A stretch of DNA of 64,000 nucleotides from assembly GCA_047495785.1 (NCBI GenBank), contig JBLDXI010000046.1:1116001-1180000 (forward strand), read 5' to 3'. Within the stretch, counting starts at the first letter, position 1. Each line of letters opens with the position of its first letter. The position numbers and the translations under genes are program-made. The notes under the pieces were generated by a model. That model was not told the origin of the DNA. It did not search any database and saw only the letters and a list, made by a program, of their open reading frames with translations. Source of the DNA: Lepidodermella squamata. Its lineage: Eukaryota; Animalia; Gastrotricha. Below are positions 3,621-64,000 of this stretch, one piece after another.

Positions 3621-3745
3621 AAGCAAAAAGAATGACCGCATTTCGGCAAATTTCGTGGCTCCAAATAAAACTCGTGGCAAATCGAGCACGATAATGATTG
3701 AAGTGAAATAATCCAAAATTTTCGAAAGGGAGAAATAAACCATTT

Positions 3746-20560: not shown

Positions 20561-22529
20561 CCAAGAAGTCAAATTTAGCCCAAACGATTGACCATACTCT
20601 GGAGTTCAAGCTAGTATACAAGTATAATTCGCTTAAAATCTAATAAGGGAAAAACGATAGCAACGATGAGTTTATATAATAAAACATAGTACAGCATCTA
20701 CATAAGATTGATAATTGATAACAATCAGATACAACAATGATAGAAAGACCAGCTCCATTGGATATTCAGGTTACTGCAAAATTCCATAAAGCTGGAAAAT
20801 CTTTATAATATTGTTACGATTGAGACGTTTTGCGAGCATTAGTGGGGTGTAACCAAGACACATTACAGTGGCAAGTTGCGGATATTTCTTCAAAAATTCC
20901 TCCACGCCCTCTTTCCAATCCTCAGCGGCAGCAATGTGCAAAATCGAGGAGCCGTTGTAAGTTGGATCAAACGCAATAAGGGGCATGAAGCCTTTCGATA
21001 AAAAAAAATCAACCATCCTCAAATTGTGATTTCTAGCCGCCAGAATTAGAGGCGATCGACCATACAAATCAACAACGTTCAACGGAGCAGCATATTCTTC
21101 GACCAGCATTTTCGCAGTGTCAATCGAATAGTTTCGCTTCGCGGCGATGAGTATAGCGGAATAGTATTTTTGTTTGACAAGAACTTTTTGAGCGAAATTG
21201 GGATAGAAGGCGAGGATTGCCCTAGCAACGTCGGTTTTACCACCACGAACCGCATCGACAAAACCGTGCTCGATAAAACCGCAATTGTCGGTATATCCCT
21301 CCTTAGCAGCGATTTCGAGGAGGAATTTCATGATTTCGCCGCTGCCGTTTTGAACGGCCTCGTAAAGTTCATATTAGCCGACCCTTCAATGTTATTTTCT
21401 TCGAAAATCAGCGAGGTTGTAATTTCATTTTCCGGAGCTGGAAATTGCGAAACCAAATTTTTTACCGCTTGCAAATCATGTTTAGAAATTGCTCGGTAGA
21501 TCTGGCGAAGTAGAGCATTTTCCTAGAAATGACTAAAAATTTGAAATTATGCGTAAATTTCCCCAAAAAACTAACATTGTCAAACTTTTCATCCATGTAG
21601 TCTTGGTTTTCGGCTAGTTCGACATTCAACCTCTCGATTCGCTTCAAAGCATCCGTTAATTCGAGCTGGACATTAGTACAACAGAAAGCGATATGCCCAA
21701 TATAGGGCGACGCTTGCAGTGCCTATCAAGGAAAATTTCTAAATATTTCAAATTCCAAGGGATATGATTTCTCACGTTTTCCCGCTCAGCTTCAAGGCGG
21801 GACAACAAGTCGGCAATTTCGTCGAATTCCAAGTCTAAAATTGACTTTGACGCCATTTCTCTGGCCTCTTCGAGAACAGTTTGGTCGATTTTGACTGGCA
21901 TGTTCTCAGCGACTACCAGCCGCATTTGCTCTGAGGCTGCGGATAGCTGTCGCTTCCACCTCGCTTTACCGTTTCTCAGTGATTTCGTAACCTCAGAGAA
22001 TAAGGCGGAAAATTCGTCTATTTTCTTATTGGCGTTTTCAATATCAGCTTCAGCTTCGTGATTGCGAGAATCCGTTTTATCATGCGACGTGTCAGCGATG
22101 CAGTCGGCTATCTAAATTTTATGAGAATTAAAATGAATCAATTCGATTTGAAAGATTCTGGTAACTCAATTGAGAATAATTTAAACCAGCGACTATCAAG
22201 CCCCAATTTTCCTTCCAGATAGCCATGTTTTGCGCCCGACAGAGGCCTGCCTATAATTTCTATTGCATGTGGCCAGATAGCACTTTCGAGACTAATTTTA
22301 CTGCTTAGAAAATGTACGATGACCTTCAAAAATTTCGGAGCGACTTCAAGAAAAGATTTACCACGATTTACAATCGTTATGGTACCATCGTATTTACAAT
22401 CGGCTCAGTTGACAACTCGTTTCGACGCATTAACATTTCGACTCGATGGCTTTGAAACTGGATTACAGGCCGCTACCAATCGCACCTTTTAGGAGCCGAA
22501 ACGCGGCAAATTACCGACCGCTTACAGTG

Positions 22530-22685
22530 GTGTTCGTTCTGATACCGGAACTTCTCGATCGGATAGGCAAAGCGAAAGTGTTTACTCGGCTTGATGTGAA
22601 AAATGCTTACAATATACTTCGGATCCGGGACGGTGATGAGTGGAAAACAGCGTTCCGTTCAAGATATGGCCTCTTTAATATCTGT
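22530..22685 (+). mobile_element. Ty3/gypsy (Tf2-like) reverse transcriptase fragment
   Basis: [46 protein letters not shown]. Confidence 0.9.
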
Positions 22686-22739
22686 CATACGATTCGGGTT
22701 GAACAACGCAATAAGCAGCCAAATAATCAATGGCCTACT

Positions 22740-23275
22740 CGTTGGCAACGCGGAAAAACAACACTTGTGGAGTACCGTAGGTAGTTTTATTAGAAGCCAG
22801 TACTGGGTATAGAAAACGGCATTTTTTTCTCATACCGTAATTTCGTGCGCCGCTGTACTTGTATTAGTCGAAACGGTTACCCCATCGCGGACTTGAAGCC
22901 TTGATGAAATGCAAAGTTATATTCGTAGTAAACAGCTAGAAAAGCCCGCTTTCTTATTGCTGACAGTGTTGAGAGTTGCGATGAGTGCGTGAAACATTTT
23001 CCGAACATGTTTGACTATAAAATATTGACGGCCTATCACAACAGTCGTTTTTTACTCATCAAACGTTACCATCGATGGCGTTTCCAATGGGAGTACGCAG
23101 CCGTGCTGTGAACACCATCGCTAATGACATACACAGTAACCGTTTCGACTAATACAAGTACAGCGGCGCACGAAATTACGGTATGAGAAAAAATGCCGTT
23201 TTCTATACCCAGTACTGGCTTCTAATAAAACTACCTACGGTACTCCACAAGTGTTGTTTTTCCGCGTTGCCAACG
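22740..23275. mobile_element. MITE/foldback element with ~140-bp TIRs and 4-bp TACT TSD
   Basis: 22740-22880 is the reverse complement of 23136-23275 (one indel in a T/A run). TACT at 22736-22739 and 23276-23279. Confidence 0.75.
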
Positions 23276-24196
23276 TACTGCAACAACGGCATGATTTTAT
23301 CTGGAATAAGCAAGAACAATAACATCACAAGTTATAACGAGAACTGACTGTTCAAAGAATAGCTATGCGCTTAAGGAATACCCAAAAATCCGACGTAAGG
23401 TAGTTTTGTGCTTCTCATTCCAACTTTTCTTCTGTTCAGACTTTTCTTGAGCGACTTTATGATGATTACCAACGTTCTCCCATCTTCGAACAAGAAAAAA
23501 ACGCCCTTGATACAAATGGATGATACGTGCCGAAATCGACCAATTCTTTAGTACCGGTCATGACAGTGATCGGGAGGCTTCACAAACTATCGATCATTTC
23601 AATATGGTATCAAGGCGTAACCGCAACTTCCGCTATGTGACAGACGCCCCCGGAATCGTCAAATACGGCTGGGCTTTCATCTTGATGAGTGATGAATGAT
23701 GATCGGAATGCGAATAACGCTGCTCTTGGTATGATTTGACTTTTTTATCACTGATATATGATTTTATTCTGATTTACAAATAAAATAAAATCCACAGCTC
23801 TGCATCTAACTTAACTCTGTATCAACTTTGTGATTTGGTGGTACTTCCGCGCCGCAAGATCCGCACGTGTATATTTCCGCACAGGGGTCATTAGTGCAAG
23901 TATATTCCATCTTAATAATTACATGGCTAAGGAATGTTTGGTCTGCGCGGATAAACCATGCGCGGAAGTACCAATGCACCAACTCTCAGTCTAAATCTAA
24001 CGAATACGGATAAAATTTCAGATGTGTATTAAATCTCGTTTCAAGTATGTTCCCTCACAATAGCATAAATATTGTGCAAAAAATAAGAGCGTCGGTTAAA
24101 ACGAAAATTCGCGCAAGTAAGGATTGTTTCAATTAATTCCAAAGATTATCACTACATCTTACATCTAGTCAAGCATTCAGGCCTATCGCAGCCAAC

Positions 24197-26102
24197 ATGC
24201 AGCAATGTAGTGAGCGATGGTTAGTAACATGCGGTCTAGCTACGACATTTGCGCTATGGCTGGTAACCTGCAGATTAGCTGAATTTTATGAACTAAGAAA
24301 CGTCATTTTTGCGGTCGAAAAAAGCGATGACACCGTCTTCCAGGAACCGTTGCCACCAATAAATTCACAAATAGCCGTAACTGACAATGCAACGTGCTTT
24401 CCTATCGTTTCTTTGAAGACGTGTAACGTTGGGACACTCCATCAACTATCATCGCCGGCTGAAAATCTGCGAAATTTCAGCGCCATAGCAGCGGCAAATG
24501 CAGAAGACGAGTTGGCCATAGCCGAAAACATTAAATCGATTTACATCGCGAGAATGATGGAGAAATTTGCCTCAAATTGCCGGCCTAAAGTGATGGCATA
24601 CTCGTGCGATTCCCCGGGTTGTCGAGGATGGGGCGGTCGTCTTCGAGGCATTGTCACTGCGTTCTACTCAGCCCTACTAACCGACTCGCTGTTCCTCATC
24701 GACGCAACGCACCCTGTGGATTTAGGCAGCTTTTTCGCGATTAATTCGGAATTTTACGGTTTCAGCGGCAAGTCGGACTATCACTGCCTGCTGCGTTATA
24801 GCCGGCTGCCTATTTATCGATCAATGGATTTCGATGAGCCGGTTCGATTCGCTCTAACTGAATGGTTCGAAACGTATATAAAAATGGTAGCGATTACGAT
24901 GGCGTTAGGCTGCAGACGAATACGATGGTAGCGGTGGAACAGGGCTTGGAGACGGATTTGTTTGCACGCCTCGCTGATGTCTATGGATTGCGATTTTATA
25001 ACTATCTGCAGCTAGTTTCTGCAGCGCTTCGCGTCATTTTTGATAGGCCGCAGCCGCGCCTTGAAACTATGGTGCAAAATTCATTGCGCCGAGTGGCCGC
25101 AGCATCTCACACGACTTCAAATGCAACGATAGGTGATTTTTCAGAATAATTTCATATTTATTTTAGTTTAGGACACCATTAAATCTCAAATTGATCACAA
25201 AATGAGGAATTTGAATAATAGCAATCCTTACACTATCGAAATTACCAATCTTCGAAAATTGTATCAATTTTTAGTGATTTGATCAACAATTTCCTAACTA
25301 AATCAAAAGATAGAAGCAGATTCGAGTTCCTCGATTTTCTTCACTTTTCCTGAGAACGAACTCACTTACAATTTATTTAATTGAGGAGCGTCAAAGAGAG
25401 CGGCTAATCAGAACTTCCCGATTTTATCAGATTTCAATGGTATGATCGAACTTTTTGTATCAAGTCTAAATTCGAAGAAATTCATCGCAATAGCAAGCGG
25501 CTGAAAATTGCCGTTCCTATACTCTTAAATCCCAAGTCCTATGTTTAAGCTGAAAATTAGCAGTAAAATTGATTGTTGGAAACTCAAGTCCGGTTTTTTC
25601 GATCCAGAAGTCAATGTTTTTTTGTATAGGCATACATTTGCGCATCGACACGAACCGAGTCATCGCCAAAATGATTCCCTGCTTCGCCGATGAAGTAGGC
25701 AGAATCATAAAAAAGCACAATTTGGAGCGGCCTGGCGTTTACATTTCAAGCGACAATGCGAAAGCTACAGAACGCCTTAAACGGCTGCTATGGCGTGATT
25801 ATAAAATCACAGCGCTCGAGCCTGACGACGGCGAGGTTTGGCACATAGACGTCATGGATAACGAGGTGGCAGCGAAGTGGAGCGCCGAAACTCGCTGGGA
25901 AAAGGCTGCGGCGACATACCGCGACTGGCTGGTTCTGACGCGCATGGACTATTTGATCATTAGCCGGAGTGGCTTTTCGGAATTCGCGTCGTACTACTCG
26001 CGCCGGCCAACGCGGCGCTTTATACACAAGCAACGCCACAAATGTACCTTTGAAGATTACAACTTTCTGCCTGATCTTCTTTTTGACATAAAAAATTCTT
26101 AA
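24197..26102 (+). pseudogene. Fucosyltransferase-like (GT-B; alpha-2/alpha-6/O-FucT superfamily) type II membrane glycosyltransferase with one frameshift
   Basis: N-terminal TM; GWGGRLRG; after splicing intron 25133-25629: TIGIHLR (motif I), VYISSDN (motif II), DWLVLTRMDYLIISRSGFSEFA (motif III). An extra TA at ~24875-24880 shifts the frame between ORFs 24197..24931 and 24862..25149. Confidence 0.75.
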
Positions 26103-26967
26103 AATGAAAATTGGAACGCAAAACACATTTCTGGAGAGAAACTGAGGAGAATAAAAAATGCGCTTATTGAAATTTCCGTTTCTAAAAGTGAGTAAAAAAG
26201 CAGGAAATTATTAATTTTTCAATTTAATCAATTTCAATTTCAATTTAATTTTCAAATAATTAAAAATGGATTGAAATTAAGAGAAAAGGAATTTAAGGAA
26301 AAAATTTACCTGCTTTTGCATTGCCAAAATTTCTTTCTTCATTTTCTCAGCGTGTAAGAATTTGCATCCTTCGCAAAATTCTTGGTCGCAATGCTTGCAT
26401 AGCTGTGGATTTTGTGACACGGCCAGGTGAATACACCGATCTTCCGAGTCCGGTCCCGCACAAGCTTTCTTAGATGCCTTGAACGAATCAATCGCCCGGG
26501 CCAGCGGGAAATTTCGAATTAATACTACGAAAACACGAAAATTAAGATTAATCGAAAAAATAGACGACTACAACTTTTCGGGTCGCCGTTTGGAATCGCT
26601 GACATAGCTCGACATTCCGGGCATTCAACGGCGCCTATTGTTTTCGAAGCTTGGCCAATCATGTTAATGCACTTGAGGCAAAATGAATGGCCGCATGTTG
26701 GCAAATTTCTTGGGTCCAAGTAAAATTCATGGCAAATCGAGCATGATAAAGACTAGAAGAAAAAATTAGTGAAAAATATTGAAAAATTTAGAAGGTACCA
26801 ACCTTTTCCACATCGCTAATTTTCCGCTGTTTTGATGGCGGTGAGCTCATCATTCACTCTAAAAACTCTAAAAAATAAAACAAAAATGTCAAGTTTTGAA
26901 AGACAAAACTTTTAAACGAAAGGCAGTGCCATCGACAAAAACGAAATCGAAAATTCACACAAAAATG

Positions 26968-29784: not shown

Positions 29785-31322
29785 TCACACATGAACCAAA
29801 TAATCATGAAAATTGTTCGCTTTCAGCTGTTCAAGCTTCCTTCTGCGGGTCTCGTGAGGCGAATATCGAACTTCCAAGTCTTTCAGCTGTTGAATGGCAT
29901 CACATATATTGCGCTTGACGCGTTCGCTGCCGAGCGAAATTCGGCCCATGCGCATTGACAGCTCGTCCACCTTAAAAAAATTCAGAAATTTTCATTAAAT
30001 TAGCGTAAATAAGGTAAAAAAAGCGAAAATAATTTTCAGAATAACTAAAAACAGTGGACAATTTCCAGTGGTTGTGAAATATTTAGGAATTTTTTACTGA
30101 AAATGGTAAGGATAATTTTTTACATCAGGGTGTAAATTTTAGAGATCTCATTAGTTTTATTGAAATTTTGTTGAAATTATTTAATCGTAAAATTATTTAA
30201 AAAATAAATAGTTAGCCAAACATATTTTAATAATTCTCTGAAATTCCCTGAAAAATCCGATTTAAATTTATAATTTGTTATCTGATTTTCAGGCTTCGAA
30301 AAAATTGTTTAGTCCGAACTTATCGATAAGTAAAAAAGTAGGCTGACATTTCGAAAAAAATACCTCTTGAAAGGCGTCATCGATACGAGTTCGCATCGCA
30401 GCAATATCGTTGAGCTTGTAGTCGAGAACAGATTTCGAGGCAAGAGCTTGAAATTCATCCATCACAGTCGCGTCGAATTTGAACGACGCGTTTCTCTCCA
30501 CATCTCGTTTCATTCGATCACCAGCCGCTGTTACTTGCTGCTTGAATTTGACTCTCGCCTCATAGGCAGCAGTCGAAAATTCATGTTCGATAAAATCAAG
30601 CAAACTGTCGATTTTGGTGTTGGCCAATGCCATTTCGGCTTCGATTTCTTGAAGCCACTTGTCGTAATTTTTCTTATCGGTTAGCGCAGCAACTCGGTCG
30701 GTAACCTTTTCATTTAATTTTCAAAATAATTTTCAACACAAATTTGAGATTTATACCTTGATACGAATTTCGGTGATTTCTCGCTTCATTTTTTCGGCGT
30801 GTTTGACCTGGCAGCCCTCGCAAAATGCTTTGTTGCAGTGGTTACACTCCTCTGGCTTGGGCGAAATAGCTAAATGGATGCACAAGTCACTCTTTGACTC
30901 GTTAACGTCCTTCCAAACAAAGACAGGACAATTTTCAGGTAGCTTCAACGAATCGACAGTTCGAGCTAGCGAGATATTTCGCAGCAAAACTGCGTTGGAA
31001 AAAATTAGGATTTTTTTTGCAAAAATTGTTAAAACAAACGTTTCACGTCACTATTTGGGACTTTTGACGTGGCTCGGCATTCCGGGCATTCAACGATCGA
31101 CTTGCCATTATGGTTTTTCGTCACCTGATAAAGGCATTTCAGGCAGAACGAATGGCCACATGTCGGCAAACAACGAGGGTCGGTGAAATATTCGTGGCAA
31201 ACGAAACACGAATGAGACTGAAATCAATTGAATCAGAAGGTTAGAAAATGCAAGAAAATATTTTTTCTCACCTTTTTGACATGGCTCATTTTGTGGATTT
31301 TTCGAGGAGGCGAGCCACTCAT
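29785..31322 (-). CDS. TRIM gene E: RING, B-box-like and coiled coil only, ankyrin exon absent (truncated gene or pseudogene)
   Basis: Exons 1-5 are homologous to genes F and G (MSGSPPRKIHKMSHVKK...). Exon 5 runs into unrelated sequence and stops at 29785. No ankyrin exon before gene D. Confidence 0.6.
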
Positions 31323-38109: not shown

Positions 38110-40424
38110 ATTAAGGAATTCTTCCCGGTGTTGAGGGCAGAACCGAGAATTCTGCCCGCTGAAAATGCCCGAGGGCGTAGCGGAGCGCAGCGAAGCGAAG
38201 CCCGAGGGTATTTTCAAGGGCTGAATTCGAGGTTTTGCCCGAGACACAAGGGAAGAGTTCCTGTTCCTTCCCAGTTGGTTATTTTCGTTAATCCGACACT
38301 CGGACGAGTGAAAATGGGGAATGGTGTATAGTGCGTATGAAAGATGACCGTTGTTAATAACGAAAATAAGAAATCCAGCTTAAAATTTGTAGCAAATTTT
38401 TTTTTTGAATTTTTTTTGTTCGTTGTTCATTTCCTTGTTTTATTATCAATTGAATATTGCGAATTTCCGTCGAATTTTCAATGGAGATCACTTTTGATAT
38501 TGGCGACCTGGGCCTCGGTGCTCTCGCTGACGGCTCCGTGGAAGTGAAACAGCGCGAAGAATCCGATCCAATTCGACTTCTCGAACGAGAACTTGATGCT
38601 GATATCGAAGAAGAAGAATCCGATGAAGAGGGTGATACGTCGGAGTTCATTCAAGAAGTCGAAAATTTCGTGGCTGGTTTTGAAGCAAACGGCACAGCTC
38701 AGAAAACCAAGCAGCACTGGAGCCGATTTGTCGCATTTGTCGAGCAGCGATTCCACATTTCGGAGCAACTATTAGTTGAACTTACGGTCAAGGATATGGA
38801 TCTCTATGTCGCTCTTTTTCTCAAGCAGTTGACGAAGACTGATGGTAGCGCGATGGAGCCGACAACGATTCGAGGCATTTATTCCTCCATCATTCGCCAT
38901 CTCCGCGATGTGACGAAGAACGAAATCAACTTCACCATGGCGAGAGTCGATTTCTTCTATAGCATGAAAATGCTGAAATCCAAGTTTGTCGAATCTAAGC
39001 GTGCTGGAAAGGGAAATAAAGCCCGAGCATCTGAATGCCTAGAACGAGAAGATATTGATAAAATGCGTGAGGCGAAAACGCTGACTGATGACACGCCAAT
39101 CGGTTTGATCACGATGCTGTGGCTGGTTTTCACCGTGTATTTCGGTCTTCGTGGCCGTGATGAACATCTACAAATGAAGTAGGTTGTTGGATTGCCATTG
39201 AAAAATTGTTAAATTGGCCGTTTTCAGGTTTGGTGATGTCCAGCTAAAAACCGAATCTGGAGGTCGCAGGTATCTCGAATTCAACGAGCGACAGACTAAA
39301 ACCAGGAATGGCGAATCAACCCACTCAAAACTGGCACCACGAGCATACGAGAACGGTGGCTTTTTCTGCCCGGTTCGATTGTTCCTTATTTTTTGTGCAA
39401 AACGACCGGGAAAGTTTTCGCGCCCGAGTGACCCAATGTATGTTGTTTGCCTGACCCGATTTCGACCCGACGGCCTCTTCTACAAATGCCAAAATTTGGG
39501 CAAGAACCCCCTTGGATCGCTCCTCAAGGACGCCGCTGTCGGTGCTGGTATTACCAAACGAATCACGAACCACTCGGCTCGAAAGTTTCTCGTCTCAACC
39601 CTCTCTGAACTCGGTGTCGATTCTCGAAAGATCATCCAGATTACTGGTCATGCATCGGTCGATTCTCTGAACAGTTACCACAAACTCAACACCTCTGAAC
39701 GACGAAGTATCAGCGACAAACTGGCTGTCGGTTTCGGTGATGGACAATCAGCTGCAGTTTCGGGTGTGTCTGCACAAGAGATCAAGCCAACCGAAGGATT
39801 GGTGGTGGCCGAGTCGCATTTCTCGCAAACGCTGCTGCTTCGAAACGTCGAAAATGACCCGCGCGATGAGCCACCCGTAAAGCAAGCTAAACCCATGCCG
39901 ATCTTCAATTTCTCGAATTGCTCCGTCGTTATTAATAATTAATCCGGCCCAAACACTTGTTTTAAAGTTTAAACATTCTAATAAAGGTTATTCACTTGTT
40001 CACTCGTTTGGTCAGAGTCTGAAGGTTGTAGTAAAGGGACTGGGAACGGAAATTGAAGTTGTGCAACATTATTTCAGGTGAGAGGTTTTCCCGAATTTTC
40101 GAGAGCATCAATTGATTTTCGAAAATAAAAAATCCACCCTAATCGTTTGAGCGGGCAGAAACATCGGGCAGAATCACTTTTTCCGTCTAGGCAAAAAATA
40201 ACCAACTGGGCAGGAACACTCATCAAACTCGCGCAATAGGCAAATTCAGTCGAAATTTAAATTCGAGAAATTGTGCGGTAAAAAATAGCAGCACTTTCGC
40301 GTCTCTCAAAAAATATCAAATAATCGGTAATACAATTTGAGCTGAGCGAGTCAACGTATCTATTTTATTCCGGTTAATTTCCAGAAATTTAATTTGGAGT
40401 GACCTAAAAACGAATATCGGATTA
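38110..40424 (+). mobile_element. Crypton-type tyrosine-recombinase DNA transposon (~2.3 kb)
   Basis: YR gene inside. ~150-bp palindrome at 38114-38262. Inverted subterminal matches at 38263-38285/40195-40217 (22/23) and 38289-38302/40411-40424 (12/14). ATTA at both ends. The boundaries are inferred. Confidence 0.75.
38481..39942 (+). CDS. Crypton/DUF3504-type tyrosine recombinase (~470 aa, 2 exons)
   Basis: Exons 38481-39178 and 39228-39942 join in frame across a 49-nt intron. Catalytic motifs FGLRGRDEH (R), RQTKT (K), TNHSARK (HxxR), ITGH and LNSY (Y), plus CPV. Confidence 0.9.
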
Positions 40425-50116: not shown

Positions 50117-50330
50117 CTATCTTTTAACAACAATTTTTCGAGCGAAATCGGGATAGAAGGCGAGGATAGCCCTAAAAATGTCCGTGTTACCACTGCGAAC
50201 CGCATCGACAAATCCTTGCTCGTTAAAACCGAGGCTGTCGCTACATCCTTCCTCAGCAGCCATCTCCAGGATCTCTACTGCTGTTTTGAACGACCTCGAA
50301 AATGTTCGTAGCACACCCTTCAATATTCAA
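50117..50330 (-). pseudogene. Ankyrin exon fragment of the TRIM-ANK family
   Basis: EQGFVDAVRSGNTDIFRAILAFYPDFARKIVVKR matches gene H and the 8212-8963 pseudogene. Confidence 0.8.
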
Positions 50331-50847: not shown

Positions 50848-52937
50848 TTATTCAAAAACACCATTAATCTCAAAAAGACGGACAAAATCGCCAAGTTTCA
50901 TTCTCTTAGCTATCTCTAGAGGAGTAATACTGGCAACACCAGTCTTAATATCGGAACATTTAATGGTAGCAAGATGGGGAAATTTTTTCAAAAACTCTTC
51001 CACGCCTTCCTTCCAATTGTAAGCCACGGCAATATGCAAAATAGTCGTGTTGTTGAAAGAAGGGTCAGTTGTCAGTGGTGAAGAGCCCTTGGAAATGAAG
51101 AATTCAACCATTTTCAAATTCCGGTTTCGAGCAGCTAAAATGAGAGGTGAACGGCCATGCAAGTCAATTACATTAATCGAAGCCTTAAATTCTTCGACCA
51201 GCATTTTTGCAGTATCAATGTGATAGTTGCGCTTCGCCGAAATATGGATAGCAGAATATAGCTTTTTCTCGACGATAATTTGCCGAGCATAATTAGGGTA
51301 GAACCTTAGAATAGCCCGGGCAACGTCGGTTTTACCTCGTCGAACAGCCTCGACAAAACCTCTTCTGATTAAACCTGAATCATCAGTATATCCCTCCTTC
51401 GCAGCAATTTCGAGAAGGAATTTAACAATTTCACCATTGCCGTTAATAACTGCCTCATAAAACATGTTAATTGCTGCTCCGTCAATATAATTTTGTTCAA
51501 ATATCAGCGAGATTGCGATTTCATTTTCTGGAACAGGAAATTGAGAGATTGAACCCTGCACCGCTTGCAAATTATTTTCCGAAATTTCTCGATAGATTTG
51601 GCGAATGAGCGCGTGCTCCTAATATCAGTTAAATAAGAATTACAAATCAATGAGAAAATCGACCAAGCAAGAAACAACGAACTTTGTCAATTTTTTCGTC
51701 TATTTCGTCCTCCCTATCAGCCAGTACGACATTCAATGAATTAATTTCTTTTAAAACATCTTTGAAATCGAATCTTAGGTTATCACAGCTGAAAGCGACG
51801 TGGCCAATATATGACGATGTCTCACTCGCCTGGAAAATCCACCTTAAAAATTAGAAAATAAAGTAACTCGAGATATTTCTTACATTTTCCCACTCAGTTT
51901 CCATGCGCGACAACAAGTCGGCGATTTCGTCAAATTCTAAGGTCAAAACAGATTTCGATGCGATTTCTTTCGCCTCGCCGATAACACTTCGATCGATTGC
52001 GATCGATTCGTTATCAGTAACTCGCATTCGCATTTTTTCTTCCGCCACCGATATTTGTCGATCCCACCTAGCTTTCGCGTTTTCCAGAAATTTCGAAAAT
52101 TCGGATGATAGGAAAGCGACGAAATCGTTCACTTTCTTTTTAGCATTTTTGACGTCGCATTCGATTTCCACAAGTCGACAATCCCGAGTTTCTTTACTCG
52201 TCACATCGGCCACGTGGTTAGTTATCTGATTTCCACGAAAAAAAATCAGGAATTGAGTTGGCGTCAAGCTTCCCAAAACATATGGTCCAAAAATGTTCCC
52301 AACAATTAATTTTTGTAGAGGGAATTTTTCAATCAGTTTTGTGGCGCAGTCAATATATTTCGATACAAATAAAGTAAAATAAAAGTATACCTGCATTTCC
52401 AATGACATTATTTTGTTTTTCATTTTTTCGGCGTGTAAGAATTTGCATCCTTCGCAAAATTCCTGACCGCAATGTTTGCACTTTTCTGGATTTTGCGACA
52501 AGGCCAGGTGAATACACCGATCTTTCGGGTTTGGTCCTGGTAGAGATTTTAAAGAGGAATCTTTGACGGAATCAATCGCCCGGGCCAGTGGAAAATTTTT
52601 GATCAAAACTGATCAAAAAATAAATAAATTCAATAGTCATCGACAAATTCGAAAAGACAACTTATTGGATCGCCGTTCGGAACTTTGGATGCCGCTCGAC
52701 ATTCCGGGCATTCAACGGAGCCTTTAGTTTTCGATGCTTGGCAAATACGGTGTATGCATTTGAGGCAGAAAGAATGGCCGCAAGTCGGCAAATTACGTGG
52801 ATCTATGTAAAATTCATGGCAGATCGAACAGGATAGCGACTGGATGAAAGAAAAATTATTGCATATTTCGAACATTTCCAACCACCAACCTTCTCAACTT
52901 CACTCATTTTTCGCTGCTTCTGAGGTGGTGAACTCAT
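50848..52937 (-). CDS. TRIM-ANK gene I
   Basis: MSSPPQKQRKMSEVEK; RING 52630..52881; B-box and coiled coil in 51851..52606; ankyrin 50848..51570. Confidence 0.88.
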
Positions 52938-53026
52938 TTTTATTCAAATTATTTCTAAAATTGGAAATTTATTGCTTAAGATTCAAACAAAATGGCCGAA
53001 ACTGATAATAAAACAACAAAAAAGAG

Positions 53027-55202
53027 TTATTCGAAAATTCCTGAAAGCTCGAAGATCTTGACAATTTCGTCACGCTTCAGCGATTTCGCCAAAGCTAAAG
53101 GAGTGCAATTTTCCCGATTTTTCATGCCAGCAAGTTGCGGGAACTTTTCGAAGAAAAATTCGACACCTTCTTTCCAGTCCTCACCAACAGCGATATGCAA
53201 CAAATTTCCATCTAGATAGGACATATCAATGACGAAAGGACTGAGGCCTTTTGAGATCAAATATTTGACAGTGGGCAGACTGCCGCGTCGAGCAGCTAAA
53301 ACCAGCGCGTTTCTTCGATTTTTATCAACCGCATTGATCGGAGAAGCGAATTCTTCTGCCAGCATTTTTACACATTCCTCTGTGTAATTTCTCTTTGCAG
53401 CATAGAGTAGCGCAGTGTAGCCTTTCCTTACGTCGATGATACATTTCGCGAAAACCGGATAATAAGACAAGATAACTCGAACGACTTCCGACTGGTATTT
53501 TTTGATGGCGTCGATCAAACCTTGCCGAACCATATAAAACTTTTGTTTACTTTCGTCGTAGGCAGTAATTTTGAAAAAATAATCCACAACATCAGCCCGG
53601 CCTTTGGCAATAGCTTCGTCGAACAAAGTCCCTTCGCCCTCGACTTGAGCTAAATGCTCGTCGAAAATCGGCGACATGAAGTCCGTGTCCGGTGGTGGGA
53701 ATTTTGAATGAATAGCTTTGACCTCATCCAAGGTTCCAGATGAAATGGCTTTGTATAGCTGAATTGTCAAAGCAGATTCCTGTAAAATAAAAATAAAATA
53801 AAAAAAAATTCGGCGAAAATTATTATATTTTCTCGTATAATAATTTTCAAGCGAGAGTGCCTTACACAGAGGCAAAATGTGAAAATTTAAAATAATCGAG
53901 AAAAAAATTCAAGAAAAAAGGTGAATTTTTTTTTATTAGGCTAAAACACTCAACCAACTCAAATTTTCGTGGTAAAAAATGATAAATTGACAAACTTGAT
54001 CATTTTCTTCTTTGTTGTACCACTCATCACGTTGCAATGAAACATCCAATTTTTCCATCTCTTGCAGAAAATTTGAAAGCTTGACTTTGGTAGTAGCACA
54101 ACCAAACGAATTATGGCCAACGAATTCCGAGCGGTGACAAATATCCTTAATTTAAAAACATTTTCAGGGATAGTTTTATTTCCAAATTTGTGAAAAATCT
54201 ACATTTTTCCAAATTTGGTCGATTTCAAGTCGCAAATTTGCCACGTCGTCTAATTTTACGTCCAACACCGACTTGGCAGCGATTTCTTGAGCTTCGAGCA
54301 ACACAGCTTCGTCGACTTTGAAATCCAGATCTTGCTCAATTTTTAGCCGCATTGCTTCCGAATTCTCCGCGATCTGCTGCTTCCACTTGGCCCTGGCTTG
54401 TTCGATCGATTTCAAACCTTCAGACAGGACAAATTCCGCAAATTCATCAACTTTTACGTTAGCTTTCTGAGCATCAGCCTCAACTTCAGCGAGACGTGAC
54501 TCAAATTTCGACCGATCATTTAAATCGTTGACATGATCGATGATCTATAATGGCAACGGAAAAATGTGTAAATTTCAAAAAAAGACATTTAAAGGCAGAT
54601 TTTTAGGCTTATCATTTCTGGATTTCTATAATAGAAATGTACCTCTTTCGAAAATTTTGCAATTTCCTTTTTCAGTTTTTCAGCGTGTAAAAAGCGGCAC
54701 CCCTCACAAAACTGCCGATTGCAATGTTTGCAAAATTCAGGGTTAGCTGAAACTGCCAAGTGAATACAGCGGTCTTTTTCTGAGCTATAAAACGGGTAAC
54801 GCAATTCAGTTGCTTTCTCGGCTTCTTTCAGGGATTCCACAGTTCGGGCCAGCGGAAAATTTCGCGATAATTCTATATAAAAAAACAAATGGTAGCACAA
54901 ATTCCAGGAAAATTCGAGGCTATACTCTTTACGTCGCCCTTAGGAATCGTTGAGACAACCCGACATTCTGGACATTCAACGAAAGTCTTATTCGCCCGAA
55001 CTTGAACGACGAGGTGCAGACATTTGAGACAGAAAGCGTGGCCACAGGCAGGTAAGTTTCGGGGATCCAGGTAGAGCTCGTAGCAGACCGGGCAAGATAA
55101 GGACTGAAAAAACAATTTTGAACTTGGAATTTATTTTACCAATTTTTTTTAAACCTCTTTGACATTGTTGAGTTTCCGAAGCTTGGAAGGAGGAGCGCTC
55201 AT
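53027..55202 (-). CDS. TRIM-ANK gene J (closest to gene D)
   Basis: MSAPPSKLRKLNNVKE; RING 54873..55115; B-box 54589..54900; coiled coil ~54200-54545; ankyrin exon ~53780-53027. Confidence 0.88.
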
Positions 55203-55509
55203 TTTTTCGACTGAAGTGTTTCCCGAGCGTAAGCAAGTCAAAATTCAAGTCTAATGACAAATTCAAGAAGTTCAAATTTAGCTTACAAGCTTAGAGATCA
55301 AGGAAATCACGCGGAACGTATTAAATTCGGATCGCACCGAACACTTTCGAATATTAGACGATAAATTTAAAAAATTGCAAGTATAATCCAAAACGGTAAG
55401 AGACAGATCCAGAAAATAATAAAATGTCCTAAAAATTGCCTTTATTCAAATGAAATAAAAACTTACTAACAAACGAGGGGCAAAGATCGGCCTAATCAGC
55501 TGAATCTTA

Positions 55510-58500
55510 TTAATCGTGAATTTCAAAATCGAAATCACAATAATTCAAAAATTCTTGCAAAATCACCGGAATCTCGAGACTCTTAATAGCGTTTTGACGT
55601 TTTTTCAGACCAAACGGTAAACATCGAGTAATTGTTGATCGAGCCAAACTCTGAAGTGATTTGGGATAAAAATTAGGAAGCTTTCCCAAAAATGAGGCTA
55701 AACCATTGCGAAATCTATCGTCAAGGCCACTCAAAATGGAAGTTAAGTTACGACAATCAAAGTTTTCAAGATTCAGAAATTCCAAGGCATAGTTAACGTA
55801 TTTCGATTGAGATCCAGGGTGGTCAGAGAGAAGTGATACATGATAAGTGAATAAGTCAATATCGTCTTCAGAAATCAAACCATCGTTGCTTCGAAAACCA
55901 GCTCGAAGCATCGGTAAGAGGGCATATTTAAGGGTGCGTTCCGCAGTTCTGAAAAATAAAGTTTCATCTTCACCACCCCACGGAAGTGCGAAATAGTCGG
56001 AATAAATTGAAAACCAGCTGATCGTTCGGCTGCGTGAAGCCCGGCAGTACCGCTCGATAATATCAGGATTATAGCGGATTGCTGGCAACATGCTTAAAAT
56101 GTTGTTTTCAAAATATTCCTGGTCTTCGGTTATTGGAATTTCCGACGCATTTTCGGCCATTGTCTCCAAAAAACTGTTGCAGTTGTCCGTGGTTTGACCC
56201 ATATACAACGAGTCCAATCCTTCGTCTTCGAAAAGCCGTGACATCATGTCTAAATTCAAAGAAAATTTGTTCATATATTTATTTAAAAATTACAAATAGA
56301 TTAGACTTGATTCAAAATTAAAATGTATTATGATTTCGCATCTCGATAATGACTGAGTACTCATTTTAATTGGTTTCATTCGTCTTTTTTAACAAACCCT
56401 ATCGTATTTATGTTTCGGCCCAACTTCATCGTTTCAGTAGAGCTGAATAAGGCTCAACGTCTCGAGCATTCGCAAACTTTATGGATTTTTCGGCGGCTCT
56501 GATTGAAGCCCTTAAACCGAACACAGAGGTCAATTTAGTGCAATCTTCAGTGAGCAATTTCGTTCCAAACTTTGAAATTCTTTCCGGCGCTGAGCGTTGT
56601 ACCGTTAACATCCATCAAGTTGATCATATGGCCGAAAATGTTGACACGTTCGGTCTTCTATATAAACACAGCACTTTCGATTTCGAAAGCAAAGCCGGCC
56701 AAATGGTCCGCTACCTGACAAGTGACAACGGGGTGATTTCGCATACCTTCTTTCAGAGCTACTAATAATCGCAGCTTCCTTCGCTTCTCTTTTCTTGGAC
56801 CAGCACTTAACATTGATGATCGATGCTCGAGAGAGGCTAAGCAAATTGACGAGAGGAATTTGCCAGCTTGAAACAAACAAATCAGCGTTGCTGCTAATGA
56901 CTACCTTCATATCGGCCCCAAGACCTTCGGCAAGGTTAAATACTTCATTTGCGTCAAAATGCTACATACATTAAAGCGATAAAATTCACCGGTAAGCTCT
57001 GTCGAGGCGTTTGGGTTACGCCTCGATCCGCGAACAAGCCAAGGCCATATACAAACAGCGGCGCACACCGGGAACATTTTGCCGACTCAATGATTGAAGC
57101 GGGCTACAGCGAGGCGGAAAAAAACTTGCTCAATATTTCTCCACCTTAAAATTTATTTTCAGAAGACTCGCGGCTTTAGCGGGCGGTGGCCCCAACAAAG
57201 CAATCGACAGCGGTGCGTTGACGTTCGAAGACATTGGAAGTGAGCGCCTATCCGTTCAATTGGACCTTTACTGATTTCAGTAACCAGTCTTGAAATTTCG
57301 TCGTTGAAATTGACGGCGCTGAATTATGACTGCACTGGCCGGACTCTGTTGCGTAAATCGTATGAGCATATTTGGTGTTTACTCCGCAATCCATCGAGTA
57401 AGTTAGATTCGCCTACTATTTTTTTTGGAAATTACGACATCCTGGTCGCCCCTTCCGTCAGACGAGGTGAGTTTAAACACGGCGGCTTTGACGGTTGCGG
57501 TTGCCGTCATCAGAAACTAGGGCGTGACACATGGTTTACCCCTCCTCCCTGATTTGCTTGCTGTCGCCAAACTACAAGTCCCAAAAGTTCCCAAAACAAA
57601 CTCCGTTTATTCCTAAAACCTAAAATCAAACCAAGAATGCACATCGATGCACAGCCTTATTTCCTCACATTTTTGAACATTTGAAGTCAGTACCCGAAAG
57701 AGCTGAAATCGTGAAGAATGAGAGGAAAGATATCACTACCAGCCAGAAAGTGCGACACAACGCGTTAACTTTACCAATTCTTCAGCGGCAAAGCTCTACT
57801 GGGAAAATTCCGATTCCACGTTTTATCAGCCATTTTTCGCAAAAATCATGTCCCGTGATCGCTTCAAACAAATTGTCCGTTTCCCAGACACCACAAGAAA
57901 CCTCGCCGCCCTACCTCGAAATGACCCCGTCATTCAAAAGATACACAAGGTGCGGGCGTTTTTCGAACGCTTCATCTACCCTACTTCGTGAAAATCATTC
58001 CGTGCTATCAGCTAACGAAGATCAACATATTTCAGCTGTTGGAAGAGATGACATTTTTATTCGATGAAGAAAACCACATCCCCGGCGAATTTGAAATGGA
58101 CTCGGTGACCACAGAAGTTTGACCGACTTGAACTTTGAGTTGGACTCAGATGCGAAAGCGTATCGTCTTACGTCTCGTCCACAGTTTTGAAAGAAGACTC
58201 ACAGGGTTGGTCGCTACAGTCAGCCCGTCGTCGATTTGACTCAACAAGTACCTCGAACCTCGAGTATCTCAAGTGTCGGTTTAACTTACGGCAGACAACT
58301 CTACATGCATCAGAAAATTCGAAAATTTGCGCCAGATCAGTTGAAAGATATGCCCAACGCCTGTGATCCCAATCCTCGATTCTTGCTCCCTTTTCGACTG
58401 ATTCAAATATAATTAGATGGCAGCACGCGCTGAAGGTCTAGAATCTAATGTCGCCTCGAGCCACCGGAATGGCATGAAACTAGGCGGAGACTTGGTAAAA

Positions 58501-59587
58501 TCGGTGAGAACGCGATTTCATCCCCAGGGAAGCTGGATTATACCGAAATGGTTACGGCTAATGGTCAAGAATGCTCGCATGCCCATGCTGAGCTGATTCA
58601 TGAAGCCCACGGGCAATCATGTACCGTGGGCAGATTTCGGACTCTTACCAAGTTTGAAAAGAAATTACGAGAGAAAATTACTAAGAGCACTTCCCATTTT
58701 AACCTGCCTCGAGACCTGGCTCGCGAACTCAGACAATTTTTGCTAACCTAGTTGAAATATTCGCCTACCAACACTTTAAAATTTGCAGCGGTCAATTATT
58801 AACAAAAAATCAATTCTGATTTCGAAAGAAAATTATTTGGAGAGATAAGAGATAACTTACGCGATACAAGCTCACAGCCTTCCGCTTTGATGCCATCAGA
58901 TAACAGGTGCGATGCGATGATTAGAGCCACAGGTTGGCGACTTTCAGTATCTTCCAGAAAATCTATCGTAAATCCTCTCCCACGTTCCAGTGCTACAGCT
59001 AGCAAGTGTGACGAAAAGCACGGAGGGAGAACCGATTTTCTGGTTGTGTAGACTATATCAAAATAGTTAGCGCAGTTCAAACAGGTAGAGAGATAAATTG
59101 CGATCGCATCCAAAGGGGTGAACTGCGTCGATGAGACATTTGATTTCGACAAACATTTTTTGAACGAGTCAAATTGGAGCCATGAAAAAATGTTGTAGTC
59201 CTGAAGATCGCAACCCTTAATCGCTATGCTATAACAGCCGAACATGTATGGCAGCAGAAGTTGCGAATTTTGCTCAGCGCAGCATTCCGAAAATGATTTG
59301 TGGTTACATGCGACCAGAGATACCCCTGCCGGGTCATAACCATGAGATTTCATGGCGTCGTCAATTAGCGATTGTAGAGCTTGAGTCATTGAAGCGAGAA
59401 ACTCGGGATTTTCGATCGCACAAGAATTAGCCAAGTTGATCTTGCGACAAACCAACTCGCTATGATCCACCTTAATCAAAGGATTCTGACACAAAAAAGC
59501 TTTAGATATAGCAAGTATTCAAGTTACACAAATTACCGGGTCAAATTTCCTTAACTTGGCAACTTTTCGAGGCGGCGAGTCGGACAT
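55510..59587 (-). CDS. SOCS-box protein L (~471 aa): NLS exon, Cys-rich unknown domain, C-terminal SOCS box
   Basis: Exons 59587-59537, 59485-58861 and 56249-55510. The phase-1 donor and acceptor match across the 2.6-kb intron (ELVS-H-MMSRLFED). SOCS box PKSLQSLARSTI...IKSLEIPVILQEFL. Confidence 0.75.
57785..58135 (+). mobile_element. piggyBac remnant plus adjoining sequence, homologous to 61195-61570
   Basis: Shared strings aagctctactgggaaaattc, aaaatcatgtc.cgtgatcgcttcaaacaaat and ccctacttcgtgaaaatcattccgtgctatcagctaacg. Confidence 0.65.
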
Positions 59588-59940
59588 TTTGTAAAAATAA
59601 ATTCTAAATTCAGGCAAATTTGAAGTCGCATCGAAGTGGCTCACGCACTCATAATATTTTGTTGATTCAAATTATGATATTTGGCAGATTCGCGCGATAT
59701 TCGGCGAAAATTATGAGAGAAAGTTTTACTTGTTCGACGAGACATGAAAAGCAGCAATGATATTTTTTACGGTAGGAACGAAATCATATTGGAGTCACAA
59801 GCTCAACGAATAAAATTCGACGGCTAAAAAAAAGAAGAAAAATGTTCGGTAAAAATGTCAGATTTGCCCGAGCATGTTATAAAAAAAATGACTTCATCTA
59901 TAAATCAAACACCGAGAAAACAAGGTCAAATTCAGCTGCA

Positions 59941-62900
59941 TCACTGATCATCAAGTTCAAAATCTAAATCACAATAATTCAAAAATTCTTGCATCTTTGC
60001 TGGAATATCGAGATTCTTAATGGCGTTCTGACGCTTCTTCAGACCAAAGGGTAAACATTGAGTAACTGCCGAGCGAGCACAACTTCGAAGAGTCTTGGGA
60101 TAGAGCTTTGCGAACTTCTTCATAAACTTGCCAGAATCGGCCTTCAATTTTTCATTAAGGTTACGACGTTCAATTTTTTCGAGATTCAGAAATTCCAGAG
60201 CATAATTGACGTATTTCGATTGAGATTCAGGGTAGTCAGAAAGAAGTGAAGCGTGGCGGCTAAATGCATCGATATTAGTAGCTTTAGTCAAACAATCGTT
60301 GCTTCGAAAACCAGCTCGCAGCATTGGTAAAAGCACATATTTAAGGGTGTAATCAACACGCGTCACAAATGAATCTTCATCTTCATCAGCCCAGGCTGGA
60401 CCAGAAAATTCGAAAACCGAAAACCAGCTGATCGTTCGGTTACGAGAAGCTCGGCAGTACCGCTCAATAACACCAGGATGTTGGCAGATCGCCGGTACCA
60501 TGCTCAAAATGTTGCTTTCGAAGTATTCCTGATCTTCCGTTATTGGAATTTCCGAGGCGTTCTTGATCATCGATTCTAAGAAAATGTTGCAGTTGTCCAT
60601 GTTCTCATCGCTGTAACTCTGATCCAATGATTCTTGATCTTCGAAAAGCCGTGACATCATATCTAAAATGCAAAATCAAGTTCAAGAGAATTGCAAATGA
60701 AAAAGTTACTGTAATAGCAAATTGTTGTACATGTTCAATTTTGGACATTCTACGCTTATTCCACCGCACTGTCCCCCAAATGTTTGAACTATAGCTAAAA
60801 ATTAGTTCTGTTCGGGTAAATCCAAGTTTTGACAACTTTCGAAACCATTCCTCTTCAATTTGAACTAGCTGGCCACAAGGAATCGATCAAGTTCGAAATC
60901 ATCGCAAGTCCGCACTACTCTATTGTTCTCGGAATGCCTTGGTTGAAACAGCCAAACCCGAGCATCAATTAGAAAGCTAAACAATGCACTATTCATCTCG
61001 GTATTGTGCCGAATGCTGCCACGTTGAAGATCAGGAAAATTCTCTTACCGGCCGCGTCCTGTTGGGCGGAATTCTTCTAGTGGCCCAGATTATGGCAAAA
61101 TGAATCAAACAACACATGAGTTTTTCCGCCAGCTTGGTACCGACCAGGCCGCCGAAAGGTGCCACATAACGCTTGAACTTCATCAATTTGCCAACGGCAA
61201 AGCTCTACTGGGAAAATTCAGATCCAATGCTCTACCAACCGGTTTTCGCAAAAATCATGTCTCGTGATCGCTTCAAACAAATCGTCTGTTTCCTACACAC
61301 CGCAAACAACAAAGATGCCCTGCCTCGAAATGACCCCGTCATTCAAAAGATCTGCCCTACTTCGTGAAAATCATTCCGTGCTATCAGCTAACGGAGATCG
61401 AAGTATTTGAGCTTTGGGAAGAAATTACATTTTTATTCGATGAAGAAACCCACATCCCCGGCGAATTTGAGATGGACTCGGTGACTACAGAAGGTACGAG
61501 TTTGGCCGTCTTGAACTTGGACCCCGTCATTGAAAAGATACACAAGGCGCGGGCGTTTCTCGAACGTTAACTAGATGCCTGAATCGCTAATTTCGAAATC
61601 AGATCAGAGGTTGTCGTTGACGAGCAAATGGCGGCCTTCAAAGGCCGAACCACACTCAAGCAGTATATGCCGATAAAGCCAGTGAAGCGCGGTCTCAAGT
61701 TTCTCGCCTTGGCTTTGCCTCCAATTGGCTACATCTTTCGTTCGCTGCTCTACGGCTGGAAATGCAACCAAGTTATTCTTTCCTCGCAATTTTCTATTTT
61801 ATGTTTTCTCAAAGTAAGCAACGGAACTTGGTCGGCCAAGTGAATCGTTTGGCGATTGGCTACGGCAATTAGCGGTTGCGGCGGATTATTTGCAAGAATA
61901 ACTGTAAAATCCTGTCTCATGGCACAAGAGCGCCTAAAACTAGAATTCAGTCCAGAAGAATTTGAGACGTATAACATGAACGGTTACAAGGCAGGCTGTG
62001 GCTAAACATACTTTCCCGACCTGAAAGTATTTTCAGACTAAGAACTCGGTTTTCTCTCAACAGCGAGTATTTTTTACTCTGGAATACCATTTTTGCCTTC
62101 GAGGAAGTGAGAATTTGAAGCAACTAACCAAGAATTCGTTTGTCTTTATCACCGAACCAGACGGCCGTGAAGCAGTGACCTGCTATTAGACAAATTCTAC
62201 AAATCCGCCCCCGACGGCCGTGGCCGAAACAAGCGTTACTACATTGGTTCATTTGATGGTAAAGAGCGTTGCCCGGTCGAAGCTATTCGGTTCTATTTTC
62301 AACATTTTTCACCTGATCCTGACAATTTTTCGCAATTTTCTCTCTGATTTTCCTTTGACTGGACAAAAAGGTAAGGTATGAGTGCAAGAAATACCAAATT
62401 AAAAGACGGATTGCCCAAATTTATCACACTACAATTTAATCGCCCTCTCCAAATTAAAAAAAGAGAAAATGCTAGCTGAACTTACGAGATACAAGCTCCG
62501 AGCCTTCCGATTTGATGCCATCCGCTAAAAGGTGCTCTGCTATGGTGAAAGCAACATCTTGGCGACTGACAGAATCTTCAAGAAAATCGATGGAAAAGCC
62601 CTTCGAACGATCCAGGGCAACAGCCAGCAGGTGGGACGAAAAGCACTCAGGAAGGACTGATTTCTTGGCTGAGTAAACCATTTCGAAATGATCAGAGCAG
62701 TTCAAACAAGCGGACAGGTATAGCGCAATCGCATCCAACGGTGTGAATTGCGCCAATGTAGCTTTCGATTCCGCAGTCCATTGCCTTATCGAGCAATACT
62801 GCAGCCATGAAAAAACGTGCGAGTCCAATAGATCATAACTCTCAACCACAATTCGATGGCAGCCGAACATGTAAGGAAGCAGGAGTTGCGAATTTTTGAG

Positions 62901-63208
62901 AGCGCAGCATTCAGAAAATGATTTGTGGCTACATGTGACCAGAGAAATCTCCTTGGGGTCACAGCCATGAGATTTCACAGAATCGACGATTAGCGATTGG
63001 AGAACTCGAGGGATTGAAGCTAGAAACTCAGGATTTTCAATCGAACAAGAATCGGCCGACTTGCTGTTGCGGCAACCCAAATCACTATGATCCACCTTAA
63101 TCAAAGGATTCTGAAAAAAATCGGAATATTAGGGTGAAATTAACATATCAAAAATACCTGGTCACGTTTGCATAATTTTGAAATTTTTCGAGGCGGCGAG
63201 TCAGACAT
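59941..63208 (-). CDS. SOCS-box protein M (~465 aa), tandem paralogue of L
   Basis: Exons 63208-63158, 63110-62486 and 60662-59941. Exon 1 (51 nt), exon 2 (625 nt) and all phases are the same as in L. SOCS box PKTLRSCARSAV...IKNLDIPAKMQEFL. Confidence 0.75.
60915..60975 (+). mobile_element. Ty3/gypsy protease-region fragment
   Basis: IVLGMPWLKQPNPSIN motif. Confidence 0.55.
61173..61760 (+). mobile_element. piggyBac transposase remnant
   Basis: MSRDRFKQIVCFLH; DEQMAAFKGRTTLKQYMPIKPVKRGLKF...GYI. Confidence 0.85.
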
Positions 63209-63285
63209 TTTTTATTAGAAAAATTCTAGGAAACAAAATCATGAACAATTTAAGCTATTAACAATTTAAAGTTAAGCTAGAACAA

Positions 63286-64000
63286 TTATTCAAAAATTCC
63301 GTTTTCTTCGAAAGTTTTGATGATCAGCCGACGCTTTAGGTTCAAGGCCAGAGCCATGGGAGAAAAAGCCTGCCGATTCTTCATTGCAATGAGCTCGGGG
63401 TGATTTTTAAGAAAGAACTGCACACCTTTAACCCAATCCTCCTCAACAGCGATATGCAATACGGTGTAATCAAAACAGGCCTCGTCGCCTAAAAACGGAT
63501 TTGCGCCCTTTGAAATGAAATATTTGACTAGTTCGAGGTTTTTGCACCAAGCAGCCAAGTGGAGGGGTGATCGGCGGAATCTACTCAGCGAATTGACTGA
63601 AGCTCCGTATTTTTCAACCAACCGATTTGCAAGGAACGAGAAGCCACTTTTAGCAGCTAAATGCAATGCGTTGAAGCCATTTTCTTGATCTAAAGTATTT
63701 TTCGCTAATTCAGGGTAATAGCCCAAAATACAAATCGCTTGGTGGAAGTAGTTTTTCTTGATGGCTTTACACAGTGATTGCGTTACAACTTCAACTTTCG
63801 TATCGGATTTAACACTTTTCGTAAGTTCAAGGCACTGACCAACTATTGAGGTTTCGCCTCTATGAGCAGCTTCTTCGAACAAACTTCTCTCGTTATTTTC
63901 AATTTTTCCAAACAAGCACTGCTCTCTTGAATCCTCTGAATCGGCAATCAAATCCAAGAATCTTTGAAAGCCGTAGTAATCTCCTTCCTGTATTGCCCGT
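63286..64000 (-). CDS. TRIM-ANK gene K, ankyrin exon only (5' part lies outside the window)
   Basis: Ankyrin ORF with family-typical HIAVEEDWVKGVQFFL and C-terminal ENGIFE. Confidence 0.8.
   Translation of the reverse strand, partial: RAIQEGDYYGFQRFLDLIADSEDSREQCLFGKIENNERSLFEEAAHRGETSIVGQCLELTKSVKSDTKVEVVTQSLCKAIKKNYFHQAICILGYYPELAKNTLDQENGFNALHLAAKSGFSFLANRLVEKYGASVNSLSRFRRSPLHLAAWCKNLELVKYFISKGANPFLGDEACFDYTVLHIAVEEDWVKGVQFFLKNHPELIAMKNRQAFSPMALALNLKRRLIIKTFEENGIFE

Follow-up and report, generated by a model that had tools for sequence, protein, structure and literature searches.

Gastrotrich RING-ankyrin and orphan SOCS-box genes with a common, conserved first mini-exon in a same-strand array of putative ubiquitin-ligase components

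Why should two types of gene related to ubiquitin ligases (E3s), one encoding RING and ankyrin domains and the other a SOCS box, lie together on one strand and begin with the same short exon? The question is raised by a stretch of 64,000 nucleotides (nt) from the gastrotrich Lepidodermella squamata (assembly GCA_047495785.1, contig JBLDXI010000046.1, positions 1,116,001 to 1,180,000 of the forward strand), hereafter the window, within which all positions are counted from its first letter. The initial annotation had proposed a co-regulated system, in which a common exon of the nuclear localization signal (NLS) type sends substrate receptors of two E3 classes to the nucleus to act, for example, against viral, transposon or parasite proteins. 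Part of that interpretation stands, since both families are E3-related, a conserved first exon is common to them and several gene junctions are tight, whereas the classical NLS rule fails in M, L, J and I, the four genes whose starts are visible. The further steps, to a functional link between the families and to a co-regulated nuclear surveillance of viruses, transposons or parasites, are not supported. In our judgement, the locus is probably a lineage-specific, same-strand array of E3s built from RING, Cys/His, helical and ankyrin exons, with an embedded tandem pair of orphan SOCS-box genes and a 5' module common to both families. Its origin is most economically explained by birth-and-death duplication in an array that is packed and probably trans-spliced, together with a single exchange in which a 5' exon passed between the families.

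On the minus strand, the open reading frame (ORF) listing and Pfam together give the order K (an ankyrin exon), M and L (SOCS box), followed by J and I, both of which combine a RING with a zinc module, a helical region and ankyrin repeats. The stop codon of K ends at 63286 and the ATG of M lies at 63208, which leaves 77 nt between them; the end of the M stop (59941) is separated from the ATG of L (59587) by 353 nt, that of L (55510) from the ATG of J (55202) by 307 nt, and that of J (53027) from the ATG of I (52937) by 89 nt. Order, strand and spacing are thus as first described (77, about 350, about 310 and 89 nt). The idea of two co-clustered E3 types is borne out to the extent that both are present on the same strand, but they do not form a balanced pairing. 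A tblastn map made with the window's own exons resolves the entire 64 kb into one minus-strand array of at least 12 RING-ankyrin genes, amid which L and M are the sole genes with a SOCS box.

The feature that joins the two families is the first exon. M, L, J and I open with MSDSPPRKISKLCKRDQ, MSDSPPRKVAKLRKFDP, MSAPPSKLRKLNNVKE and MSSPPQKQRKMSEVEK, respectively, which are homologous phase-0 exons of 16-17 codons with the pattern MS-x-SPP-x-K-x-RK, each ending at a phase-0 GT donor that is followed by an intron of 47-60 nt. The window contains 15 such copies, all on the minus strand and each preceding a gene body, and the sharing is therefore not a product of chance. The copies comprise 16-18 codons (22 in g19 and 19 in g16), retain a GT donor in phase 0, ahead of an intron that measures about 45-60 nt, and conform to the consensus M-S-(x)-S-P-P-x-K-x-R-K-(M/I/L)-x-x-V-(E/K)-(K/E). 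Sequence flanking the mini-exons does not align between copies. Within them, the mean rate of synonymous change (dS) between copies exceeds 1, such that silent sites are saturated, and the ratio of the mean nonsynonymous rate (dN) to the mean dS is about 0.3. The conservation of the protein in the face of saturated silent sites argues that the peptide is functional. By these comparisons the mini-exon is of old date, its copies in the two families are homologous, and it is the encoded peptide that has been conserved. The serine at position 2 is encoded by TCY in L and M and by AGY in every RING-ankyrin copy that has a serine there; recent copying of the mini-exon is ruled out by this difference in codon class together with the saturated silent sites. 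A form of 17 codons that opens with the eight residues MSDSPPRK is common to L, M and the RING-ankyrin gene g44, and g31 has the same form with G for D at position 3 (seven of the eight residues).

The core of a classical monopartite NLS is K-(K/R)-X-(K/R). The description of the mini-exon as the same basic, NLS-type exon at every visible start is accurate as regards homology, but when the M, L, J and I copies were scored against this core none matched, their basic residues being spaced as K-x-R-K instead. Just two of the 15 copies contain it, namely g19 (KKRK) and g16 (KKLR). The first exon of g19 (19661-19726, minus strand) carries the textbook basic cluster DSPQPKKRKMSDVEK, and that of g16 (16701-16757) reads PKKLRMSDVEK; these clusters may represent an ancestral, stronger form of the common motif. 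The nuclear surveillance system initially envisaged draws upon these canonical clusters (PKKRKM in g19, PKKLR in g16), upon a common basic mini-exon that is conserved as protein and whose basic cluster is preceded by proline, and upon the 77-nt K-M junction, which connects the two families in an operon-like manner. Set against these are the failure of M, L, J and I to fit the generally known NLS consensus, pairwise dN/dS values of 0.15-0.28 that give no sign of overall diversifying selection, and the presence of two SOCS-box genes as opposed to at least 12 RING-ankyrin genes, which is unlike a paired design. Such a system is, in our estimation, highly improbable.

The same peptide could instead be a regulatory or partner-binding motif, the candidates including a basophilic-kinase site (R-K-x-S with acidic residues after it) and a docking peptide for a common cofactor such as a ubiquitin-conjugating enzyme (E2) or an adaptor. 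The string RK(M/I)S(D/E)VE occurs in I, g26, g19 and g16, with looser versions in g44 and g11, and the predominant departure from the classical NLS rule also speaks in favour of this explanation, but L, H, J and g29 have A or N where the others have the serine, and there is accordingly no universal phosphosite. As an account of the locus we hold it to be fairly unlikely. With regard to the peptide itself, the basic residues are tentatively consistent with a weak or atypical nuclear-import signal, a reading with a chance of near one in three, and the kinase-site or docking reading is equally open.

Evidence that the mini-exon is used comes from the SOCS-box genes. Both consist of three exons with intron phases 0 and 1: M at 63208-63158, 63110-62486 and 60662-59941 (465 amino acids), and L at 59587-59537, 59485-58861 and 56249-55510 (471 amino acids), all on the minus strand. 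In each gene, the 17-codon mini-exon is followed by a second exon encoding an orphan N-terminal domain (208 codons in M, without a Pfam match) and by a third exon encoding a predicted all-alpha region, the SOCS box (about 59977-60099 in M and 55543-55665 in L) and the stop codon. Public reads from two runs bear on the region. Run X2 is RNA-like, with coverage restricted to exons and nothing in the 1.8-kb M intron, and run X1 is DNA. Contigs from X2 hold both M joints, 63158-63110 and 62486-60662, with GT..AG ends on the minus strand; they also give exon-only coverage of L exon 2, and carry the exon 2-3 joint of L in the form of one loose end, which passes from position 58861 into the opening letters of exon 3. 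Both L and M are transcribed, and in M the mini-exon is spliced on to the gene body. The two proteins are 62-65% identical (65% in exon 2 and 62% across exon 3), with dN/dS of 0.28 and dS of 0.70-0.85, values that identify them as old tandem duplicates, both under constraint. Intact frames, purifying selection and RNA spliced as predicted rule out that L and M are pseudogenes or an assembly artefact.

Two further observations concern this pair. A remnant of a piggyBac-type transposase (Pfam DDE_Tnp_1_7, E 1.6e-7) lies on the plus strand in intron 2 of M (61173..61843), and a related fragment occupies intron 2 of L (about 57747-58138), the two being 77-94% alike by blastn; either the insertion is older than the L/M duplication or one transposon family entered both introns. 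In addition, the X1 DNA reads contain a second version of M exon 2 over 62510-62648, at about half the depth, in which 15 of 139 positions differ (eight silent and seven replacement changes, roughly 10%). Either the two alleles diverge to a very high degree, or the second version belongs to a paralogue, near-identical to M, at another place in the genome.

What might L and M do? The SOCS box of L scores 35.3 bits against Pfam PF07525 (E 1.4e-8) and that of M 22.9 bits, the family cut-off being 23.5 bits. The published BC-box consensus is (S,T,P)LXXX(C,S,A)XXX-hydrophobic, followed either by a Cul5 box, LP-hydrophobic-P, or, 8-23 residues past the BC box, by a Cul2 box, hydrophobic-PXX-hydrophobic-XXX-hydrophobic (PMC3355856). 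Both proteins contain a fitting BC box (SLQSLARSTI in L, TLRSCARSAV in M) and, 19 residues after it, a Cul2-box-like segment that matches the Cul2 pattern (IPVILQEFL and IPAKMQEFL). The Cul5 motif is half kept as LEIP and LDIP, in which just the fourth-position proline is retained. L and M are thus most likely substrate receptors of Elongin BC-cullin ligases, a role predicted from these motifs. Taken with the RING of J and I, the motifs make both families plausible E3 components, which is the form in which the original attribution to two E3 classes survives.

The remainder of L and M proved refractory to comparison. No Pfam family was found in the roughly 400 residues upstream of the SOCS box, word searches with exons 2 and 3 returned no relatives, a profile of the two exon 2 sequences had zero matches among 1.84 billion representative proteins, a sequence search of the PDB with the L/M body yielded chance matches only, and the exon 3 ORF, when looked up as an exact match, was not on record. 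AlphaFold2 run on two-row alignments gave predicted local distance difference test (pLDDT) values of 36 for exon 2 and 50 for exon 3, too poor to trust. The exon 3 model, at this low confidence, is all-alpha and made of short helix pairs. Foldseek found nothing in the PDB at E <= 1e-3, and VIA-align returned generic helical solenoids only, with Z up to 9.6, which is within noise for helical repeats. The Cul2 receptor ZYG11B, considered as a structural match, was set aside for the same reason (Z 8.4, within noise).

By language-model features, L exon 3 is closest to SOCS-box and ASB clusters (score 0.94-0.97), a proximity that we treat as a lead: the L/M body might consist of ankyrin or helical repeats that have become highly degenerate. 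If so, L and M could be extremely diverged ankyrin-SOCS (ASB-like) proteins; receptors of the ankyrin type would then serve both families of the array, which might have a common ancestry deeper than the first exon. The features remain nearest to the ASB17, ANKRD9 and ASB1 clusters even when the SOCS box is removed (score 0.94), and the all-alpha model with its helix pairs is of the expected kind. However, no Pfam ankyrin match appears at E values up to 10, hhalign against the array's own ankyrin alignment gives a probability below 1%, a hidden Markov model (HMM) of the repeat scores about 0 bits with no internal repeats, and the structural resemblance is to the generic solenoids described above, from models of low confidence. 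Derivation of the L/M body from the ankyrin domain of the array is rejected at the sequence level by the hhalign and repeat HMM results, and an ASB-like ancestry is distinctly unlikely.

The RING-ankyrin genes have a more familiar content. J (53027..55202, minus strand) comprises the mini-exon (55155-55202), a RING exon (54933-55103), a Cys/His zinc module within the ORF at 54589-54900, a helical region (54179-54415) and an ankyrin exon (53027-53731). I (50848..52937, minus strand) has the same arrangement, with the mini-exon at 52890-52937, the RING at 52663-52839, the zinc module at 52392-52608, the helical region at 51885-52225 and an ankyrin exon that extends down to 50848. In both, the ankyrin exon encodes about 240 residues, and the charged exon after the zinc module is conserved and probably helical. 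Pfam recognizes the RING of J (zf-RING_UBOX, E 2.3e-10; zf-C3HC4, E 3.1e-7) as well as ankyrin repeats in K, J and I, and RING exons are present in 12 members of the array. The visible part of K (63286..64000, minus strand) is the last, ankyrin exon of a member of this family (Ank/Ank_2, E 4e-16); its frame is open to the window edge and its start lies beyond the window end. This exon is 38% identical to the ankyrin exons of the array and is covered by RNA-like contigs. Pairwise dN/dS among the RING-ankyrin genes is 0.03-0.24 across domains, and the encoded proteins are most likely self-contained E3s. The designation of J and I as RING/B-box/coiled-coil (RBCC) proteins with ankyrin repeats is solid for the RING and the ankyrin repeats but not for the second zinc module, which Pfam does not call a B-box, so that 'TRIM' describes a likeness of layout only and makes no claim of membership. 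In a survey of TRIM proteins, the term 'ankyrin' does not occur (PMC3503706).

The junctions between these genes suggest that some of them may be transcribed together. In the K-M junction (63209..63285, 77 nt), a pyrimidine-rich AG acceptor stands 17 nt ahead of the ATG of M, and an AATAAA directly adjoins that ATG on its upstream side. In the J-I junction (52938..53026, 89 nt), an acceptor-like TTTTAG stands 17 nt ahead of the ATG of I, and an AATAAA precedes this TTTTAG by about 12 nt; both junctions are on the minus strand. A third tight junction, between g29 and g26, measures 114 nt. These gaps of 77, 89 and 114 nt, with acceptor-like sites 12-17 nt before the ATG, agree with the spacing of spliced-leader operons. 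Under a strict rule, 11 of the 15 mini-exons have an AG acceptor rich in pyrimidines in the 45 nt upstream of their ATG, whereas 29% of control ATGs do; a weaker TTTAG or TTCAG precedes each of the remaining four, which brings the count by eye to 15 of 15. Since 77 and 89 nt are too short to accommodate a separate promoter, K and M are plausibly co-transcribed, and so are J and I.

In a simplified view, the array would have grown by birth-and-death duplication, and on one occasion a 5' exon would have been captured by, or from, a SOCS-box gene, whose later duplication would have produced L and M. Each gene carries a 5' module consisting of an acceptor-like site, a start codon, 16-17 proline-plus-basic codons in phase 0 and a very short intron, and selection has kept the peptide, for which our leading guess is a motif, weak or regulated, for nuclear import or for the binding of a partner. 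Junctions as short as 77 and 89 nt are probably of the operon type and resolved by spliced-leader trans-splicing, and co-transcription of one RING-ankyrin gene with one SOCS-box gene would be a by-product of tight packing. Local duplication and the capture of a 5' exon would together explain both the co-clustering and the common exon, with no need for any 'system'.

Four points weigh against this history. The second zinc module has only sub-threshold Pfam matches, to IBR (about 18 bits) or to an ANCHR-like B-box (16 bits); the SOCS box of M falls 0.6 bits short of the family cut-off; the X2 contigs, which stop short of the 5' ends and the intergenic junctions and leave 63209-63342 uncovered, contain no leader, 5' end or two-gene RNA; and 16 codons are too few to establish which family was the donor of the exon and which the recipient. 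A more purposeful alternative would have the mini-exon be a portable address tag, preserved by selection and moved between two unrelated families of E3 receptor, with mixed operons recurring in the genome because both ligase types act together in one compartment, for example the nucleus. This we consider very unlikely, and birth-and-death with a single exon exchange remains the preferred account.

The window contains array members in several states of completeness. Full or nearly full members are K, J, I, H (ATG 49377), g44, g36, g29, g19 and g16, and g11, g5 and g3 are degenerate copies. The gene g31 (30289-31322, minus strand) has a mini-exon, RING, zinc module and helical exon with no ankyrin exon before the next gene, and is either a copy that has been truncated or a variant that naturally has the RING only. 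Another member, g26 (20771-26853, minus strand), is split by an insert of about 4 kb into RING and zinc exons (26319-26749) and helical and ankyrin exons (20774-22057); within the insert lie ORFs on the plus strand that match no Pfam family (24197-26102), as well as a fragment of a reverse transcriptase (22446-22784). Between I and H, an orphan fragment of an ankyrin exon (50120-50272, minus strand), 55% identical to that of I, is the relic of a lost member. When the ankyrin exon of I was used as a query, a single weak match was obtained in the protein collection.

Mobile and repeated sequences are interspersed with the array. Two adjoining plus-strand ORFs at 38457-39942, between two array members, encode DUF3504 and tyrosine-recombinase (Phage_integrase) domains and have the look of a Crypton-like element, whether still mobile in type or domesticated. 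A direct duplication of 100% identity (2723-3324 and 10891-11492, spaced by 8168 nt) covers the first exons of g3 and g11, and an inverted repeat of about 2 kb pairs 3744-5788 with 14051-16191 at 96-99% identity; these repeats could stem from a recent duplication of segments, from copies of a transposon or from an artefact of the assembly. Rfam and tRNA scans of the window gave no matches.

That E3 substrate receptors expand in tandem within particular lineages is well known, and is illustrated by the F-box and BTB genes of nematodes and the TRIMs of fish. The present locus is unusual in three respects: a SOCS-box family whose 400-residue body has no detectable relatives, a RING ligase design with terminal ankyrin repeats, and a single conserved N-terminal mini-exon common to both families in an operon-like array. 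Should the peptide prove to be a targeting or docking tag, the locus would represent a clean natural case of address-label exon shuffling between ligase families, and would provide a handle on the role of expanded ligases in a poorly studied invertebrate lineage.

Comparison with known systems helps to define what is familiar here and what is not. The RING-ankyrin genes recall the TRIM/RBCC arrays, such as the finTRIMs of fish and the TRIM5 clusters of primates, in their N-terminal RING, small second zinc module, helical region, variable C-terminal recognition domain and tandem multiplication, but differ in that the C-terminus is an ankyrin array and the second module is unrecognized as a B-box. 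Similar to the SOCS-box receptors of the ASB, SPSB and WSB types, L and M combine a long N-terminal part, presumably substrate-binding, with a C-terminal SOCS box that includes a fitting BC box and a cullin-box-like motif. They depart from these receptors in the roughly 400 upstream residues that lack a recognizable domain or relatives in very large protein sets, in the N-terminal basic mini-exon common to another family, and in a Cul5 box reduced to LEIP or LDIP. A SOCS-box receptor that is otherwise domain-less does exist in Caenorhabditis elegans, in the form of ZIF-1. The junctions resemble those of the spliced-leader operons of nematodes and tunicates, with same-strand genes about 80-115 nt apart and, shortly before the ATG of the downstream gene, a poly(A) signal by an unpaired 3' splice acceptor, whereas the genes involved are array paralogues and known operons, as is generally understood, typically group unrelated housekeeping genes. 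Finally, a phase-0 mini-exon and short intron ahead of unrelated bodies is the arrangement expected of exon shuffling of phase-0 N-terminal modules, with the difference that both recipient families reside in one array and both appear to encode E3 components.

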